NCBI GenBank assembly: GCA_013416795.1
Contig: RQSC01000518.1
Span: forward strand, 162,533-226,532
Reading direction: 5' to 3'
DNA: 64,000 bases
Origin: Prasinococcaceae sp. CCMP 1430
Lineage: Eukaryota > Plantae > Prasinodermophyta
The position numbers and the translations under genes are program-made. Shown here one piece after another: positions 43,553 to 64,000 of the stretch; position 1 is the first letter of the stretch, and the number at the start of each line of letters is the position of its first letter. The notes beneath the pieces are model-generated. The model was not told the DNA's origin. It saw nothing but the letters and a program-made list of their open reading frames with translations, and did no database searches.

Positions 43553-43687
43553 GTCCCAACACATGCCCTCGGCCAACAGACTCGCACACATGCCACTTCC
43601 TCAGTAGACCACAACGTGTTACGCCCCGCCCCATCCCGCAGCGGAGACGCACGCGGAGCGGGACGCCCGATCGCCCCGCCCGCCCCC

Positions 43688-44110
43688 GAAGATGAGAGAA
43701 GTCTCACTTTGATGGAGGATGTTTTTGAAGGACGGCTTTCTTTCTTTGAGGTTTTTTCTTTGGGAAGAAAGGTCTGAGAAAAGAAGGTCCAGGAAAAGTT
43801 CAAAAACCCTGTATCCGTACCTAAACCGACACTGGTGCGCGGGTCGAACAGACTCAGGCGTCGAGAGACCCATGGTTAAGGAACTCGGCAAATTCACTCC
43901 GTACGTTCGCAAGAAGGAGGGCTCCAGTCTGACTGGAGTCGCAGAAAAATGTGGCCGGGGACTGGTTATTAAAACCACAGGTCTCTGCAAAGTCGAAAGA
44001 CGACGTATAGGGACTGACGTGTGCCCAATGCCCGTCGTTGTACAGGACCGGTGTTTGCCGGAAATCGAAAACCGGGCCAATGGCTGCTGTATCACTGACA
44101 GTACTAAGGT
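43688..44110 (+). rRNA. rnl: Mitochondrial LSU rRNA exon 1, 3' part only (to E. coli position 1931); 5'-truncated at the junction
   Basis: ccgtacctaaaccgacactggt, aaggaactcggcaaa, tattaaaaccacagg, ending ...tactaaggt. Confidence 0.9.
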
Positions 44111-44235
44111 ACACCAAAGCTGCCTTCGAACAGACCACTCTATGCGGGAAAGAATCTTCACCCGCAGGACACCAACGACCCTTTAAGGTCTAGTAGGATC
44201 CTCAGAGACTCTATGTGGTCCACTCTGAATCTTTC
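44111..44235 (+). other. Group I intron L1931, 5' half (P1 to start of P8)
   Basis: P1 aaggU/Gccuu, P tatgcgggaa 44141, Q acccgcagg 44160, R tcagagactc 44202, P3 gaccac/gtggtc. Confidence 0.85.
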
Positions 44236-44291
44236 TTTCTTCTCCGACCACAGGAGAAAAGAGAAAAAACCAGAAAAAAGAACTATTCGTG

Positions 44292-45725
44292 AAAGGACGG
44301 GTTTGATCCTGGCCCAGATGGAACGCTGGCGGTGCGTCTAACACATGCAAGTCGACTGGGCAATGCTCAGGGCGTCCGGGTGAGTAATAGACAGGAAGAC
44401 TACCCAAAGGAAAAACCAAGGGAGAGAGTCCCCCGAATGTTTGGAAAGGAAGCATCCGCCTTTGGAGGGTCCTGTTTCGGATTAGGTCGTAGGTGGTTTG
44501 TGCCCATCCTAGCCGATGATCCGTCGCTGGTATGAGAGTATGATCAGCCACACTGGAACTGAAAAGGGCTCAGACCTGAAATCAGGGCAGCAGTGAAGAA
44601 TCTTGCACACTGGGGGAAACCCTGATGCAGCGACACCGCGTGAAGGAGGTTGACAGCGCACTGTTGTAAACTTCAAGACTTTCTCCTATGATGAAGGAAA
44701 AAAAGAGAAGCCCCGGCAAACTTCGTGCCAGCAGCCGCGGTAATACGAAGGGGGCGAGTGTTCATCGGAATGACTGGGCGTGAAGGGTGTCTAGGCGGAG
44801 GTGCACTCATCGGGTTAAAGCCCTGGAAGAATCGAGGAAAGGCTCGGTGAAAGGCACACTCATGGGTCTGGGAGAGGAAAACGGAAGGCTCGAGGAAGCG
44901 GTGCAATGCAGTGATCTCGAGTCGAAGGCCAATGGGCGAAGGCTGTTTTCTGGCCCAGCACCGACGCTGACGCACGAAAGCGTGGGGAGCGAAGAGGATT
45001 AGAGACCCTCGTAGTCCACAGCTGAAAACGTTGTGCTCCATCTAAGGGTTGAAAAATTCTTAGGGATCAAGGTGTACGCCGGAGAGCACCGCCTGGGGAG
45101 TACGGCGGCAGCGCTGAAACTCAAAGGAATTGACGGGGGTCCACACAAGCAGTGGAGCATGGGGCTTAATGCGATGATACGCGCAAAACCTTACCAACCC
45201 TTCCATCACACCAGTTCTGGTGATGAGGCGTACTGCATGGCTGTCGTCAGTTCGTGATTTGTGTCCTATGATTCATTTCAGAAACGAGCGAAACCCGCCT
45301 TTTCAGATTCTTTCTGACTGAAAAGACTGCCCTCGAGAAGGGGGAGGAAGGCGCGGATGACGTCAAGTCCTTATGGTCGTTATGGGTTGGGCTGCACCTG
45401 TGCTACAATGGAAGCTTCAATAGGTGATCGAAAGGGAAACCTTGAGAGAACCCTCAAAGGCTTCCTTAGTTCGGATCGGGGGCTGCAACTCGCCCTCGTG
45501 AAGGAGGAATTGCGAGTAATCGCGGATCAGAATGCCGCGGTGAACACGTACCTGGACCTTGTACACACCGCCCGTCACACTTTGGAAATTTTTCTCAGGT
45601 GAAGTACAGACATCCTTCTTTTTCTCTTTTCGAGGAAGAAAAGAACTCTGTCCCACCCTGTCAAAAGTAACTGAAGTGAAGTCGTAACAAGGTAAGGGTA
45701 GGGGAACCTGCCCTTGGAAGATGAC
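44292..45725 (+). rRNA. rns: Mitochondrial SSU rRNA
   Basis: gtttgatcctggc, gtgccagcagccgcggtaatac, aaactcaaaggaattgacggg, ttgtacacaccgcccgtca, gtcgtaacaaggta; ends approximate. Confidence 0.97.
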
Positions 45726-46354
45726 CAGAAAGAGAGGGAAAAAACCACCCTCCACTCGGAATGAGAAAGCAAAATGGTTTTGTTTGAATCTTCAAGGATT
45801 CGTAAAAAAAACACAAGAGTCTTTGAAAGAAAAAAAAGACTGAAAACCTTAAACCTTCAGTCTTCCATCATACATGCTAACGAAAGACAGCAGGTTTTTT
45901 ATAGTACTCTTATTAAAACCAAAGAAGAAGAGGGTTCAGGAGGTTTTTTCTTCTTTTGAGTGACCGCTTTCTTGGAGGGGGCGGATGCTTCTTTCCTTCT
46001 TTGGGTTCTCCGGTCTGGTTTCCCTTGTTTGCGAGCGAGAAAACATGTGTTTGTCATAAAGGAAAGGTTTTTTTTTTTGAATCATACACACCACAGAAAA
46101 AAGAGACTCAAGTCTTTGGTCAGACTTTTCTGACCCCTTAGAGATAAAATTTTTTATTTAAGAAAGGAGGTCCATACTTGAGCATATGGAAAAAAAGACA
46201 TAGACTTGACCCTATGGGAAAGGATAGACATGGTTGACCGTACGGGAAAGGATGAATATACCTGAGCTTCAGCGAAAGGGTGTGTGCTCAAGGATTTCTC
46301 AAGAAAAATCCGTTTTCAAGGGCGGTTTTTTTTTGAGACCGCCTTTATGGAATT

Positions 46355-46437
46355 GGCCCCTTTAGAAAATGAAGGAGGACAGTCTTTCGGTGGAAAAACT
46401 GTCGAGATTTCAGATGGAAAAGCGCGTCCATTCAACG
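46355..46437 (+). other. Group I intron L1931, 3' half (P8 3' strand, P7 3', P9, terminal G)
   Basis: Ends ...ttcaacG directly before the resumed rnl sequence agcgaaattcc; S-like gaaggaggacagtct is imperfect; P9-like hairpins. Confidence 0.7.
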
Positions 46438-46728
46438 AGCGAAATTCCTTGTCGCATAAGTAGCGACCCGCATGAATCACGTCACCACCGGCCAGCTGTC
46501 TCAACCATGGACTCGGTGAAATTGAAGTCCCCGTGAAGATGCGGGGTACTCACGGTAAGGCGAGAAGACCCCGTGGACCTTTACTCAAGCCCTGCATTGA
46601 GTGTCGGGACCTGTGTGCGCAGACTAGGTAGGAGCGGTATCCATAGGTTGCGGCCTAGAGGACACGCATCAGTGAGAGACTACCCACACACACCGGCGCT
46701 CTCACCCTGTGGACAGTGCATGGTGGAG

Positions 46729-46768
<40 letters not shown>

Positions 46769-46990
46769 TGTATGCAAGGTAGGCTCACCCCGGACGGCAA
46801 CCGGGCGAGTGGGGAGAATGCCCTATGCCTGCTTGACTGTAAGATGGGCACATCGAGCAGAGACGAAAGTCGATCATACTGAACCGGAGTTTCCTTGTGG
46901 AAGGGGCTTCGCTCAACGGATCAAAGGTACCCCGGGGATAACAGGCTTATACTTCCCGAGAGCTCGAATCGACGGAAGTGTTTGGCACCT
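46438..46990 (+). rRNA. rnl: Mitochondrial LSU rRNA exon 2 (E. coli 1932-2500)
   Basis: agcgaaattccttgtc...gtttgactggggcggtcgcctcctaaa...ggggataacaggct...tttggcacct. Confidence 0.93.
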
Positions 46991-47270
46991 CACACATCGG
47001 GGCAAAGAAGAAACCTTCTTTGATGAAGGCAGAATGCGGGAACCTTCAGAACGAACAATCCGCAGGAAAGAGTGGTCTTTCCTCAACGACTCAACGCCTT
47101 CCTTTCTTTGAAGTGGGGTGACCCACACACAAAGAGAGAAGAGAGAGTCTTTCTTTTCTTGAAAAAGAAAAACGGTCGTCGACCCAAAGACGAACGCACA
47201 CAGAAAAAACATCCTTTCAAAAAAAAGACTTTTTTCCCTGTCTTTTCCTTTGAAGGATAAATAAAAAATA
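46991..47270 (+). other. Group I intron L2500, 5' portion (P1 through P7/P9); 3' limit approximate
   Basis: IGS acatcg/ggg, P aatgcgggaa 47033, Q aatccgcagg 47057, R tcaacgactc 47083, S aagagagagtct 47139; P7 GACTC/GAGTC. Confidence 0.87.
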
Positions 47271-47289
47271 TATCTACTACCTTTCTTTT

Positions 47290-48447
47290 TCATTGAACCT
47301 TCCATCGAAGAAGGAGGTTTTCAAGGCGTCCAAGGACCGGGGTCAGCACAAGGAAGTAGAAAAAGAAGTAAAAGGTCAAAATTTGACCGATTTCAAGGTA
47401 GGGGGACTCGACAGGCATCGCACCAATCCATCCAAGAAGAAGGGCGGTGGCCACAAAGGACCAGTACGCCATTGCTGCCAATGGTCGGAAGGCGTTTGAT
47501 CGAACAGATGCTGTATGAAGCCAAGGCATGAGTCCGAGGCAGACAAAGGTTGCAATCATTGCCACAACCCCAAGAAGTTTGTCTGGAATAGACCGAAGAA
47601 CAGCGTAAAAAGGAAGGACGTAGAACTCTGGAACAATGTGTGCAGGGGTACTCAAAGGGTTTGCTGGAATGTAGTTATCCGCATGCCCCAAATAGTTGGG
47701 TGCATAATGGACAAAGCAAGAGAAAATAATTGCAAAGACCAACCAGGCCACAAGGTCTTTCACATAGAAAAGAGGGTACAAAGGATGCTTGTCTGTGTGT
47801 GAGGGAACTCCCACAGGGTTGTTTGACCCATACTGGTGAAGGGCTGCAATGTGAAGGATAGAAAGTCCAGCAATCACAAAGGGAAGAAGGTAGTGAAGGC
47901 TAAAGAATCGGTTCAAGGTTGCGTTATCCACGGAAAACCCTCCCCACAGCCAGACAACAACGTCATTTCCTACAATTGGAATAACGGATGCAAGGCTGGT
48001 AATCACCGTTGCTCCCCACAGAGACATCTGCCCCCAAGGCAAGACATACCCAATAAAGGCTGTCAAAATCATCAAAAGAAGGAGGACAACCCCAAGAACC
48101 CACACGAGTTCTCGTGGACTTGTGTAAGACCCATAATAGAGTCCTCGAAGAATATGAATATAGACGACGATGAAAAACATTCCGGCTCCATTTGCGTGAA
48201 GATACCGGAGGAACCACCCTCCTTCAACATCTCGCATAATATGCTCAACGCTCGAAAAGGCAAGGTCCACGTGGGGAGTATAATGCATTGCAAGGAAGAT
48301 TCCACTTGCAATTTGGATCCCAAGGCAGATTCCTGCAAGAGATCCGAATCCCCACATATAGGTCAAATTCGAAGGGGTCGGGTAATCACTCACGTGATCA
48401 TTCACCACACTCAAGACTGGTTGAGTGATCAAGGCTGATCGACGCAT
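47290..48447 (-). CDS. cob: Apocytochrome b (possible upstream in-frame ATG at 48618)
   Basis: [45 protein letters not shown] (PEWY-equivalent). Confidence 0.98.
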
Positions 48448-48756
48448 GAAAGGAGTCGGTCGGTGGTTTTCAGTCATCGGTCCGAAGGCTCCTTTTCCAA
48501 AGGCTTCTGTGTCTTGGATGGGTGCATCCCACAAAGGGGCCATTGAAAGGGGTGCGGTAGACGCAGGAAGAAGGGTTGTTTTGTTCCGTGTTCCTGAAAG
48601 TTTCACAAAGGTTGACATAAATCATGAAAAGAATGGAAAGATCATCCCAAGAGATCTCTTTTTTTCTTCTTTTTTTGAAAGATAGAGAGACTTTTTTTTT
48701 CCTGGGAAAAGAGAGTGAGAAAGGAAGAAAGAAAAAGAAAAGATACATTTTTGCTT

Positions 48757-49170
48757 AGGGTTAAAAACTCGTAGAGAGCCTTCTTAGTACAAACTCGCTT
48801 TTCGGTGTACCCGAGACACACGGTTTGCCTATTCTGCGGTGGTCTTCCGCCAGCGCTGATATGTCGTGTCAAAGCTGGTTTCGGGCTTCAGACGCACTCA
48901 GCCCTTCTCCTTTCCGGACGTAGATTCTCTGCCTTGCAGTGGGACTACAACAGACACCCCAGAGGTCCGTTCCACTCGGTCCTCTCGTACTAGAGTGAAA
49001 GCTTCTCACATATACGTCTGGACTCAGTCTGAGTCCAGGGTGTACCCTCACGGTAGGTAGAAACCAAACTGTCTTACGACGTTCTAAACCCATCCGCGTC
49101 CTGTATTAATCGGCGAACAGCCGAACCCTTCGCACCTTCTGCAGCACGAGGACACAGGGAGACGACATCG
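48757..49170 (-). rRNA. rnl: Mitochondrial LSU rRNA exon 3 (E. coli 2501 to 3' end), on the opposite strand
   Basis: Minus strand reads cgatgtcg...ggctgttcgcc...gggtttagaacgtcgtaagacag...gtactaa...ttaaccct. Confidence 0.92.
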
Positions 49171-49200
49171 CGTGTGTGTGCAAGAGAAAGACTGAACCTT
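49171..49200 (-). other. Group I intron L2500, short 3' piece ending in terminal G; 5' limit unknown
   Basis: ...cacacacacG immediately precedes exon 3 cgatgt, which pairs with IGS acatcg at 46994-46999 (P10). Confidence 0.7.
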
Positions 49201-49291
49201 GCGAGAAACCCTTCCTTTATGACAAAGAAAGAAAACCCTTTGCCTATGACAGACAAAGAAAGCCCTCCATCTTTCAGATAAAGAAGGACCC

Positions 49292-49678
49292 TCATTTCCG
49301 ATAATTCTTTGGGTGGGGACACCCATACTTCGACCGTCCTTTCCGCCGTTCAAAGACAGGAAGAAAGTCTTCCTTTGCTCGGACGCAATGGTATTTCACT
49401 CCTGGAAGGTCCTTGACTCGACCCCCTCGAAGAAGAACGTGGGAGTGTTCCTGAAGGGTATGAAAGATCCCTGGAATATAGGCCAACACAGTCTTTCCTG
49501 TGGAAAGTTTTACCTTGGTGATCTTTCGTTGGGCCGAGTTTGGTTTCTTTGGTTTGATCACGTACACCTTCAGACAGATTCCTTTCCGAAAGGGAGACCC
49601 TTCAAAGGCTGGAACGGTAGACTTTTTCTCGGCTTTCATTCGAGGAGCAGTCTTCAAAAGTTGACGAAGAGAGGGCAT
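49292..49678 (-). CDS. rps12: Ribosomal protein S12
   Basis: [11 protein letters not shown]...[36 protein letters not shown]. Confidence 0.97.
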
Positions 49679-60676: not shown

Positions 60677-61303
60677 TAAAGCCGGAGATTCTTTGAAGAT
60701 TTTTGAAGGCTTTCTTTGAATGTACCTTTGAACAGCCTTCTCAGGAAGGAGAGGAAATTGACGTTCCGTCAAATATCGATACCCCTCTTCCTTTGTTGTT
60801 GTTGGTGTGTGAATACACACTTGAAGGTAAAACCCTTCTTCCAAAAGAGGTTTCAAAGGCTCGAGTTCTGGACAAGAGTCCAAAGAATTCAAAGTAAAAG
60901 AAAGGTCGCCCTGAAGGTTCAATCCCGAAAGAGGAATTCCCTGAAAGGTTGGGTCCAAAGGGAAAAAAGTGTGGATGCATCGGGAAAGAAAGCTTTCAGC
61001 ATACTCCCCCTTCAAAGAAAGTGTAAATCCAAGAAGGTCGTTTTTTCGAAGATGGAAAGAAGCATGATGATTTTCTGCTTGCGCACTTTCAGGGTAGATT
61101 CCTGTAAGAAAACTCATGAGTTTCAAAAAACGAATCCCTTTTTTTGGATCAGATGCCAAGGTTTTTTCTGTACAATGAAGAGAAACCTGGAGAGGGCCGG
61201 TCACCTTTCCAGTATTCAAAAGACTGTCGTACACGCACACAGTTTTTCCATGTGCATGAAGGCGAGACATCAAGGGGTAGGGTGTGTAGGCGTAGGGTGT
61301 CAT
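60677..61303 (-). CDS. rpl5: Ribosomal protein L5; ends at TTA 60679-60677 if UUA is stop, otherwise runs to 60536 inside rps14
   Basis: LTGIYP...A...[12 protein letters not shown]...L.G..AESFL; position between rpl14 and rps14. Confidence 0.85.
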
Positions 61304-61335
61304 AAAAAGCACAAAAAAAGAGAAGGTCAAATCTT

Positions 61336-61710
61336 TCACAAAATTCGGGGTGAAAGACTGAGAATTTTCGTATGTTCACGCCGAAGTTCAACTCCTGCTT
61401 GTGTATGAACTCGGGTGCCCAAAGGCCCGCCTTGAGCATTCAACAACACACAGGCGTTATACCCCTGGGTCACAGAACTTCCATCTGAACGTTGGGATGG
61501 TTTCAAAGTATTGACAATAACTGCCTTGTACATTGAACCAAGACGAACTTTAGGGTTCTGAATCTTTGGACTCAAAGACCGAACACTCACAAGAATGGTG
61601 GCACCCACGCTTCCATATCCCTTTGGTTGGACTCCATAGACTTTGAGACACCGAACCTTTCGGGCTCCAGAGTTATCAACAACGTGTAGTCGACTGCCTG
61701 TAATGATCAT
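61336..61710 (-). CDS. rpl14: Ribosomal protein L14
   Basis: MII.GSRL.VVDNSGARKVRCL, SVG..I.VSV, RSDGS, N.CVLLN...P.GTRV. Confidence 0.96.
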   Translation of the reverse strand: MIITGSRLHVVDNSGARKVRCLKVYGVQPKGYGSVGATILVSVRSLSPKIQNPKVRLGSMYKAVIVNTLKPSQRSDGSSVTQGYNACVLLNAQGGPLGTRVHTQAGVELRREHTKILSLSPRIL

Positions 61711-61751
61711 AAAGAGAAAAAAGAAAGGAAAAAAAGAAGGAAAAACCCAGG

Positions 61752-62192
61752 TCAGTTTTCCGTTCCCCACTCGGCTTTTTTCTGAGAACGATCAATAAAC
61801 CGAAGAGGGACTTTAAACTTTTCTGACAAAAGAGCACAGGCCTCCTGAGCTGCGGTCTTGGAAACCCGGCTCATTTCGAAAAGAACTTCTCCTTTTCGAA
61901 CACGAGCAATCCAATGATGAGGGTTCCCTTTTCCCTTTCCCATTCGTACTTCTTGGGGCTTTCGTGTGACAAGGACGTCTGGAAAGACTCGAATATAGAG
62001 TTTTCCTTGACGCTTCAAAGTTCGGGTAATCACACGACGGGCAGCTTCAAGGGAACGAGCTGGAAGTTTACAAGGGTGGAGTGCTTGAATCCCATAAATC
62101 CCAAACATCAAATCTCCTGTGGTTGCAGTTTTCTGAAAGCTTCCCTTCATTTTCTGATATTTTCGAAAGGGTGTTCGTTTTGGTTGAAGCAT
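61752..62192 (-). CDS. rpl16: Ribosomal protein L16
   Basis: MLQPKRT.FRKYQK, FGIYGIQAL, LEAARR, IRVFPD..VTRKPQEVRMGKGKG. Confidence 0.97.
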   Translation of the reverse strand: MLQPKRTPFRKYQKMKGSFQKTATTGDLMFGIYGIQALHPCKLPARSLEAARRVITRTLKRQGKLYIRVFPDVLVTRKPQEVRMGKGKGNPHHWIARVRKGEVLFEMSRVSKTAAQEACALLSEKFKVPLRFIDRSQKKAEWGTEN

Positions 62193-62409
62193 ACAAAAGA
62201 AAGAAAGGAAAAAGGAGGCAAAAGAAACCACACATACTTTCCCTCCATACGGGGAAAGGGTGAGAAAGGAAAAACCTTACGTACTAGAATGTTTCAAAAA
62301 AACCTTTCTTTCAAGAAAAAAATCTACAAAAGATTCTTTGGTGAGAAACAAAGTGGGAGGAAGGAAAGGAAGTCCAAAGAGAAGAGTCTACCTTTGATTC
62401 AAGGCTTTT

Positions 62410-63116
62410 TAAAAAGGGGTTTTTCTCTGTTGTATCCTTGGTTGGAGCAGTATGAATCCATACTTTTACCCCAATTGTTCCTCGTTTGGTATAGGCAAGA
62501 GACTGGCTATATCCAATCTGGGCAGACAAAGTACTCAAGGGTGTTGATCCAAACTTTTTGACAATGGTTTGTTTTTTCCCTCCACCCTGTTTTCCGAGGG
62601 GACCAGACACTCGAAGGCGGAGGCCAAGAATACGGTTTGAAAGAAGACTATCAGACCCGATCTGCCCTTTGAAACCTTCCTGAGAAAGGGAAGGTTGGGT
62701 TTTTGTGTACAAGGTCCCCAACCGACCTGTAATTGCACGAGGTGAAATTCGATGTTCAAAGGCAAGAGCGATTCCTTTCGAAAGAAGGTCAGGGTGGGCC
62801 AAAAGGTCTTTTGCTTTATGAAATCGAAGGTCCACACGTTGGCCACTATAGGCTTCCAACCCTTGAAGGAAGACCCGAAGAGAGGGACCCCCAGAAAGAC
62901 GACCAAAAGGTCGTCCAAGAACCCCACTTCCCTTTGTTTTTCGGACGGGGTTTTGAGAACTCTCCTTCTGAGGCGGGAAAAAAAAGGAAGTATGTTGAAG
63001 AAGGGTGGTTTTTTCAGAAAGGGAAGGGTTCAACCCTTTCCAAGTCGATCCAGAGAGAGTTTCAAGACCAGTGTTTTCCAAAGGTTTCAGACCATGGAAA
63101 ACCAAAGGTTTTTGAA
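62410..63116 (-). CDS. rps3: Ribosomal protein S3, C-terminal part only (5' cut at n 63117); ends at TTA 62412-62410 if UUA is stop, otherwise 62311
   Basis: ILGLRLRVSG, GSTPLSTLSAQIGYS...AYTKRGTIGVKVWI. Confidence 0.85.
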
Positions 63117-63117
63117 N

Positions 63118-64000
63118 AAAAAAAAACCAAGGCTTGAGCCCAAAGGTGGAGGCAGGAGGAAACCCGAGTTTACAAAGGCTTCTTTCTTGGTTTTCAAAGA
63201 AAGGATTTTCTCTTGAGCGTATGCGATAAGGGTTTTTTCTTTCTTTTCTGTGTATAGGGGGTGTACGACCCGAAGCCAGGCGAGCTTTCCATCTCCAGGT
63301 TGAAGTCGAAAGTCTTTCGATGGAGGACCGAACCGGTGAATGTGGCAAAATTCTCGGATGAGGGGTGGAAAGGAGTGAAAGGCTTACCAAGCCTGGTGAT
63401 AGCTGGTTCTCCGCGAAATCTATGTAGGTAGACTAGACCCAGACTCCTTTTCGGAGGTAGAGCACTTGTTGGATGACGGGAGCCCAAACCTTTACGAAGT
63501 CCAAGAAAACTCCGAAGGCCGACAAAGGGTGGGTATCTGTACAGACTCTGGGCGCGAAGGTCCAGGGTCGAGAGGGGAAGAGCCCAGACCGTCCGTTAAG
63601 GTCCCAAAGTGTGCCCTGAGTGCGCAAGGAAGTCAGAAAACAGAGACATTCAGGAGATGGGCTTGGAAGCAGCCGTTCTATGATGATCGCGTACCAGCGC
63701 ACTGAATGAGTTTTTTGGCGCCGACCATACTCGGGACTGAAGGGCACCACCGAAACGACGGAGAACGATTCGTTCTGGTAGCGGAGCGTCCTGTGTTCCT
63801 TTGAAGGAAAAAGGATACTTTTTCTGGAGGACTCGGGAGTGAGCATGCTGACATGAGTAACGAGGCTCGGGGAGCCAATCCCCGTCGCCGTATGCGCACG
63901 GGTTCCACAGCACTGTTGACCATCTGTGGAAGACACGGATCCTAAGAAGATGAGAGAAGTCTCACTTTGATGGAGGATGTTTTTGAAGGACGGCTTTCTT
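63118..64000 (+). rRNA. rnl: Mitochondrial LSU rRNA exon 1 (from about E. coli 600 onward); second copy, continuing into sequence identical to 43688 onward
   Basis: gacccgaagccaggcga, ggaggaccgaacc, gatagctggttctccgcgaaa, gtagcggagcgt, atgctgacatgagtaacga. Confidence 0.9.
63946..64000 (+). repeat. Exact direct repeat of 43688-43742 (offset 20,258 bp)
   Basis: gaagatgagagaagtctcactttgatggaggatgtttttgaaggacggctttctt occurs at both sites and runs to the window end. Confidence 0.97.

Follow-up and report, generated by a model that had tools for sequence, protein, structure and literature searches.

The closest described system is the split large-subunit ribosomal RNA gene (rnl) of Prasinoderma coloniale mitochondria. 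The mitochondrial genome of strain CCMP 1220 (54,546 bp, 454/Sanger, GenBank KF387569) was reported by Pombert, Otis, Turmel and Lemieux (2013, PLoS One 8:e84325; PMC3873408). As described there, rnl is in three pieces, with rns separating rnl a from rnl b on one strand and rnl c placed on the other strand, with cob and rps12 on either side. Two group I introns are reported in the gene, one at site 1931 and one at site 2500, both spliced in trans and both lacking an ORF. The latter, Pr.rnl.2, is inserted at 2500/2501, is assigned to subgroup IB4, and is "uniquely" broken, in that paper's word, between P9.1 and the 3' terminus. According to the same source, RT-PCR gave products of the expected size for both rnl junctions, exon ligation was confirmed by sequencing, and genomic PCR agrees with the opposite-strand arrangement.

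Group I introns that splice in cis occupy the same insertion site in LSU rRNA genes of organelles and bacteria; one of them is the second intron in the mitochondrial rnl of Nephroselmis olivacea. Compared by description only, they share the IB4 fold (PMC3873408), and each forms one continuous RNA, whereas the intron analysed here is in two pieces on opposite strands. Many of the cis-spliced forms carry a LAGLIDADG homing endonuclease ORF, absent here, and the published account places that ORF at the position where this intron is broken. Other bipartite group I introns are likewise assembled at the RNA level, with their break at the loop in which cis relatives have the ORF. Those introns are broken in L8 or L9, so that each half has part of the fold; here, in contrast, the whole core is on the 5' RNA and the 3' RNA gives only about 41 conserved nt. 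A literature search found no further group I introns of rnl that are trans-spliced.

The window, the whole 64,000-nucleotide stretch of DNA analysed, was scanned in full with Rfam. Four LSU rRNA pieces were matched: model positions 1-1450 at 63110-64000 (+), 2049-2526 at 46529-46990 (+), 2527-2632 at 49170-49066 (-), and 2653-2912 at 49018-48777 (-). A bacterial-type SSU rRNA (rns) was identified at 44291-45729 (+). The rRNA halts at 46990 on the + strand and picks up again at 49170 on the opposite strand. Counted along the Rfam alignment, model position 2526 falls on the last base of exon b (U of GGCACCU) and 2527 on the first base of exon c (C of CGAUGU). Because these positions adjoin, exons b and c are exactly contiguous, with no base lost or duplicated. 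In the established 23S numbering we take A2503 to lie within CGAUGU, which puts the junction at E. coli 2500/2501. The start of exon b was read from CGAAAUUCC at 46440. The genes surrounding the two intron pieces are as follows.

46440..46990, + strand: rnl exon b, E. coli about 1932-2500; Rfam LSU match, ends GGCACCU (U2500)
47290..48618, - strand: cob (cytochrome b), between both intron pieces; Pfam PF00033, PF13631, PF00032
48777..49170, - strand: rnl exon c, E. coli 2501 to the 3' end; Rfam LSU matches, begins CGAUGUC
49292..49678, - strand: rps12, on the strand of the 3' intron piece and immediately upstream of it; Pfam PF00164

Exon c is thus flanked by cob and rps12, both identified with Pfam, and the rps12 stop codon lies 121 nt upstream of exon c on the same strand. 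The true start of cob is likely the ATG at 48477. Exon b and the 5' intron piece (+) and the 3' intron piece and exon c (-) are separate loci with cob between them, so no single transcript can contain both. Also within the window, at 43688-46440, is Pr.rnl.1 (site 1931), the companion trans-spliced intron of the published account: rnl a ends near 44110, rnl b begins at 46440, and the whole of rns (44291-45729) lies between the two Pr.rnl.1 halves.

Directly after exon b is a group I intron. When this region was searched alone, Rfam RF00028 matched 46938-47171 (+) at 51.4 bits (E = 2e-12), the gathering score being 50. The core helices (P, Q, R and S elements; P3-P8) were placed by hand, and P1, P2, P3, P4, P5, P6, P8, P9 and P9.1 were recovered in the MFE fold. 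All features of the 5' piece are on the + strand.

46991..47193, +: 5' piece of Pr.rnl.2 with the catalytic core; Rfam Intron_gpI, MFE fold, helix pairing in variants
46988-46991 / 46999-47002, +: P1, with the U46990-G47000 pair at the splice site
46994-46999, +: P10 guide ACAUCG, abutting the P1 guide; 6/6 pairs with exon c at 49170-49165, its first six bases
47003-47022, +: P2
47025-47030 / 47096-47101, +: P3, GAAGGC / GCCUUC
47035-47040 / 47059-47064, +: P4
47045-47055, +: P5
47065-47082, +: P6
47088-47092 / 47145-47149, +: P7, GACUC / GAGUC
47102-47138, +: P8
47150-47170, +: P9
47176-47193, +: P9.1
47194..47289, +: tail of the 5' piece, ending at the cob stop codon; variable, with a self-hairpin at about 47211-47258 (wild-variant alignment, cofold)

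The hallmarks of a group I intron are present: a conserved P3-P8 core, the P1 U-G pair, a guide that runs into P10, and a terminal G. Both P9 and P9.1 are in the 5' piece; no convincing candidate for P9.0 was found in the intron sequence. The two pieces are 299 nt (5') and 121 nt (3') long, too small for a homing endonuclease gene. No ORF in or across the pieces matched a Pfam family, and we therefore conclude that there is no such gene across the 5' piece. The original prediction, made from the letters of this DNA, had described much of this anatomy, and its points agree with the searches: an exon 2 ending in GGCACCU at 46990 (+) and resuming at CGAUGUC at 49170 (-), now tied to model positions 2526/2527; a group I core with P3 gaaggc/gccuuc and P7 GACUC/GAGUC, now matched above the gathering score by the covariance model it had proposed as a check; a terminal G before exon 3 and a 6/6 P10 pairing of acatcg with cgatgt; an exon 3 lying between rps12 and cob; and the absence of a homing endonuclease ORF.

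We conclude that this stretch is very probably Pr.rnl.2, already published from Prasinoderma coloniale: a group I intron in two pieces, spliced in trans, at E. coli site 2500/2501 of the mitochondrial rnl. The predicted identity with KF387569 draws on three exact primer matches, the gene order and the paper's description. Published primers 1, 2 and 3 match the window at 22/22 positions (49063-49084, 46876-46897 and 46506-46527, respectively). Primers 3 and 2 fall inside exon b and primer 1 inside exon c, so that primers 2 and 1 bracket the exon b/c junction. Primers 4 and 5, as printed, mismatch the window (43933-43998) at 1 and 3 bases. As the same mismatches recur in all wild contigs (L081-L097), they do not point to a different organism and are probably a printing issue, or possibly a difference in strain CCMP 1220. 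The window and Pr.rnl.2 agree in the site (2500/2501), the break after P9.1, the position of rnl c between cob and rps12, the separation of rnl a from rnl b by rns, and the absence of any ORF. Nothing of substance differs from Pr.rnl.2 of CCMP 1220; the window copy is in a scaffold fused to nuclear-like DNA, and the strain may differ. The suspicion, voiced in the original prediction, that this is the Prasinoderma coloniale rnl system broken after P9.1 was thus well founded. The system was already known and its trans-splicing proven at the RNA level in 2013, and no new system is added here.

Wild relatives of the locus were retrieved by exact-protein look-ups with cob and rps12, which returned 18 contigs (L081-L098) from Tara Oceans, other marine metagenomes, ENA and Logan. 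For cob the match was made with the recorded gene call, a longer ORF of 442 aa; an exact look-up of cob starting from the ATG at 48477 gave no match, as the recorded call is that longer ORF. The identical cob protein is on 9 wild contigs, and the identical rps12 protein is in 182 blocks of the searched collection. The wild contigs are 92-99.9% identical to the window. A metagenome scan with cob recovered other algae as best matches (61-73% identical) and found no close relatives; none of the 80 loci from that scan carries any intron at site 2500, and no cis-spliced relative was obtained from it.

Among the 18 contigs, which come from independent assemblies, the layout is the same in every one that reaches the region: cob separates exons b and c, which are on opposite strands. 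The split is therefore common to a range of wild Prasinoderma lineages. This bears on the possibility that an inversion made in assembly produced the opposite-strand layout of an intron that is in fact contiguous and cis-spliced. The scaffold does have other assembly artefacts, the N-join at 63117 among them, but the same split in independent wild contigs excludes an inversion with near certainty, and the 454/Sanger genome and genomic PCR reported for CCMP 1220 also agree with the split (PMC3873408). The doubt about a local inversion that accompanied the original prediction is thus answered in favour of a genuine split, and its central claim, obligate trans-splicing at LSU 2500 over opposite strands, is supported by the wild contigs and the published RT-PCR together.

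Several differences among the wild contigs lie outside the shared arrangement. Contigs L089-L098, with identical intron pieces, diverge about 100 bp past nad3, leading either to cox1-rps19-rps3 or to atp8-nad4L-sdh3. Two neighbourhoods are as expected at the boundary of the 14.4-kb inverted repeat published for this mitochondrial genome (PMC3873408). Over an unchanged stem, the 4-nt loop of P2 (47011-47014) reads AAAC in some wild lineages and, in others, GUUU, its reverse complement, or AUUU (L081, L089, L090, L093). This is a hairpin-loop inversion, a kind of change seen in organelle DNA.

The 5' pieces of the wild contigs and the window align as seven distinct versions, in which the modelled helices are 98.7% paired. 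Variable columns are concentrated outside the helices (6/129 paired versus 16/76 unpaired; Fisher p = 0.0007, seven distinct versions). Four of the six paired changes are in the peripheral P8 extension, one is in P9 (a C-to-U change that retains a G-U pair), and one affects the outermost pair of P3; P4-P7 are invariant in the seven versions. A covariation test on these versions detected no compensatory double changes in the core, because the sequences are too similar or the core too conserved. The pattern of variation is that expected of purifying selection on a working ribozyme, and the core helices are under selection.

Chlamydomonas mitochondria have fragmented rRNA, and the Prasinoderma rRNA might likewise be left in unligated pieces, with the intron-like sequence as a relic. 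The split layout itself is compatible with this and nothing else favours it. We consider it highly improbable, given purifying selection on the core helices in wild populations and the published RT-PCR and sequencing across both junctions, with primers that map on either side of the junction in the window (PMC3873408).

The 3' piece has a different character. Its conservation is confined to the last 41 nt, immediately before exon c, and all of its features are on the - strand.

49171..49211, -: conserved 41-nt end of the 3' piece; near-invariant in 11 distinct wild versions, and fold
49211-49203, -: GGGUUUCUC, the first 9 nt of the conserved end
49202-49197 / 49185-49180, -: 6-bp hairpin GCAAGG / UCUUGC with an 11-nt loop
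49179-49172, -: (CA)n linker
49171, -: terminal G, directly before exon c; invariant across all wild versions
49212..49291, -: variable part, from the rps12 stop codon to the conserved end; short hairpin repeat array

Across the 11 distinct wild versions, differences in the 41-nt end are limited to the length of (CA)n and to two variant lineages in the first 9 nt, one of which has a change that also remodels the hairpin at its base. The whole 3' piece ranges from 93 to 155 nt among wild lineages, and the copy number of the hairpin repeats varies. These spacer repeats between rps12 and the conserved intron end are 25-30-nt hairpins whose copy number depends on the lineage (49172-49291; L085, L089-L096).

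The scaffold itself joins mitochondrial to nuclear-like DNA, a feature that the original prediction does not mention. Positions 1-43687 (43.7 kb) are nuclear-like, with 59-73% GC in 2-kb windows, rising to 70-85% just before the junction, and long N gaps; from about 43685 the DNA is mitochondrial, with about 45-50% GC. No N marks the junction itself, at about 43685-43688 (43640-43745 of the window), which shows a microhomology of 3 nt (GAA) and interrupts rnl exon a midway, at the point where mitochondrial homology begins. Positions 43685-43742 and 63943-64000 have identical sequences. At 63117, one N links the start of rnl a to a rps3-rpl16-rpl14 block (61113-63116) whose orientation is opposite to that in the wild contigs. 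Given the N-join, the inverted block and the repeated 43685-43742 stretch, the mitochondrial part is a mosaic of joined pieces.

Two origins of this scaffold may be considered. The window copy could be a recent nuclear insertion of mitochondrial DNA (NUMT), a silent duplicate without splicing, as might be suggested by the fall in GC from 70-85% to about 50% at 43685-43688 across a junction with GAA microhomology and no N, and by the start of mitochondrial homology mid rnl a. This appears unlikely. The copy has not decayed: cob and rps12 are identical to those of wild contigs, and the DNA is 99.9% identical to contig L086. Moreover, the mosaic, with an N at 63117, an inverted block, and a stretch after the N that overlaps the junction stretch, fits mis-scaffolding of abundant organelle contigs. 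With no decay in the mitochondrial part, we judge a chimeric scaffold more probable than a genuine insertion into the nucleus. A literature search returned nothing on NUMTs in Prasinoderma. Whether the scaffold is a chimera or a NUMT, the window sequence represents the organellar locus faithfully. As the assembly has mitochondrial DNA inside a nuclear-looking scaffold, organelle features are to be expected in "nuclear" windows.

How the two intron RNAs come together was addressed by cofolding the 5' tail with the 3' piece in seven lineages. AGAAA (47202-47206), just past P9.1 in the 5' RNA, often pairs with UUUCU (49208-49204), just before the conserved hairpin in the 3' RNA. This candidate helix has 5 bp in the window type and 9-12 bp in lineages with a 51-nt insertion. 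Set against random 20-nt windows from the same mitochondrial DNA, the complementarity reaches only the top 2-16%; the region is of low complexity, and we regard the helix as doubtful. An unconstrained duplex prediction between the intron RNAs gave many alternative helices, since both RNAs are rich in GAAAGA/UCUUUC runs. The intermolecular P9 pairing that the original prediction proposed to model has thus yielded a 5-bp AGAAA/UUUCU candidate, with this modest ranking and these many competitors set against it.

Several of the alternative duplexes were rejected, as they would disrupt P4, P8 or J8/7 or would use the L2 loop, which wild variants show inverted. A loop-loop contact of the 3' hairpin loop AGUCUUU with AAAGACU in the 5' tail is broken in wild variant L093 and was also set aside. 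Pairing of GAAGGAU (47252-47258) with GUCCUUC (49289-49283) is possible in most variants; it is in the hypervariable part and competes with hairpins inside each RNA.

The 51-nt insertion is a palindromic element in the 5' tail of some wild lineages (L081, L090 and L093, aligned to 47209/47210), and its first bases (CCCUUU) lengthen the complementarity to the 3' piece. Because the two spacers are transcribed from opposite strands, a repeat element present in both gives complementary RNA. In this mitochondrial genome, dispersed palindromic repeats are the probable cause of the break. That such repeats also hold both intron RNAs together, through the candidate helix next to the conserved 3' end, is a tentative suggestion that we regard as doubtful. 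If true, mobile repeats would continually remodel a P9.2-like helix, and the intron would be broken in the loop of that helix. A break in such a loop fits the remark in the published account that the breakpoint corresponds to the ORF position of cis relatives (PMC3873408).

The sequence anatomy, the split retained by wild relatives and the selection on helices were observed here. Splicing most likely proceeds as follows. One RNA contains rnl exon b and the whole core from P1 to P9.1, and the other the conserved 41-nt 3' end and exon c. The latter is transcribed from the opposite strand, probably as part of a rps12 - rnl c - cob transcript, with rps12 as the likely source of co-transcription for the 3' piece. 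The intron presumably has no third piece. The order of splicing events follows general group I chemistry. In step one the core would cut after U2500 at the P1 U-G pair. Two contacts would align exon c: the 6-bp P10 formed with the guide ACAUCG, and the terminal G lodged in the G-binding site. The exons would then be ligated to give a continuous rRNA. The two RNAs may meet via P10, perhaps with the AGAAA/UUUCU helix, and perhaps with protein helpers that assist the association of the halves. Exon ligation itself was demonstrated by RT-PCR in the published work (PMC3873408).

To the published intron, the present analysis adds that the split is common to wild ocean lineages, that the core helices are under selection, and that the 3' piece ends in 41 conserved nt. 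In Pr.rnl.2 the full ribozyme is on one RNA, and the other RNA adds little beyond the terminal G and the exon. Pr.rnl.2 is thus a natural counterpart of engineered trans-splicing ribozymes.
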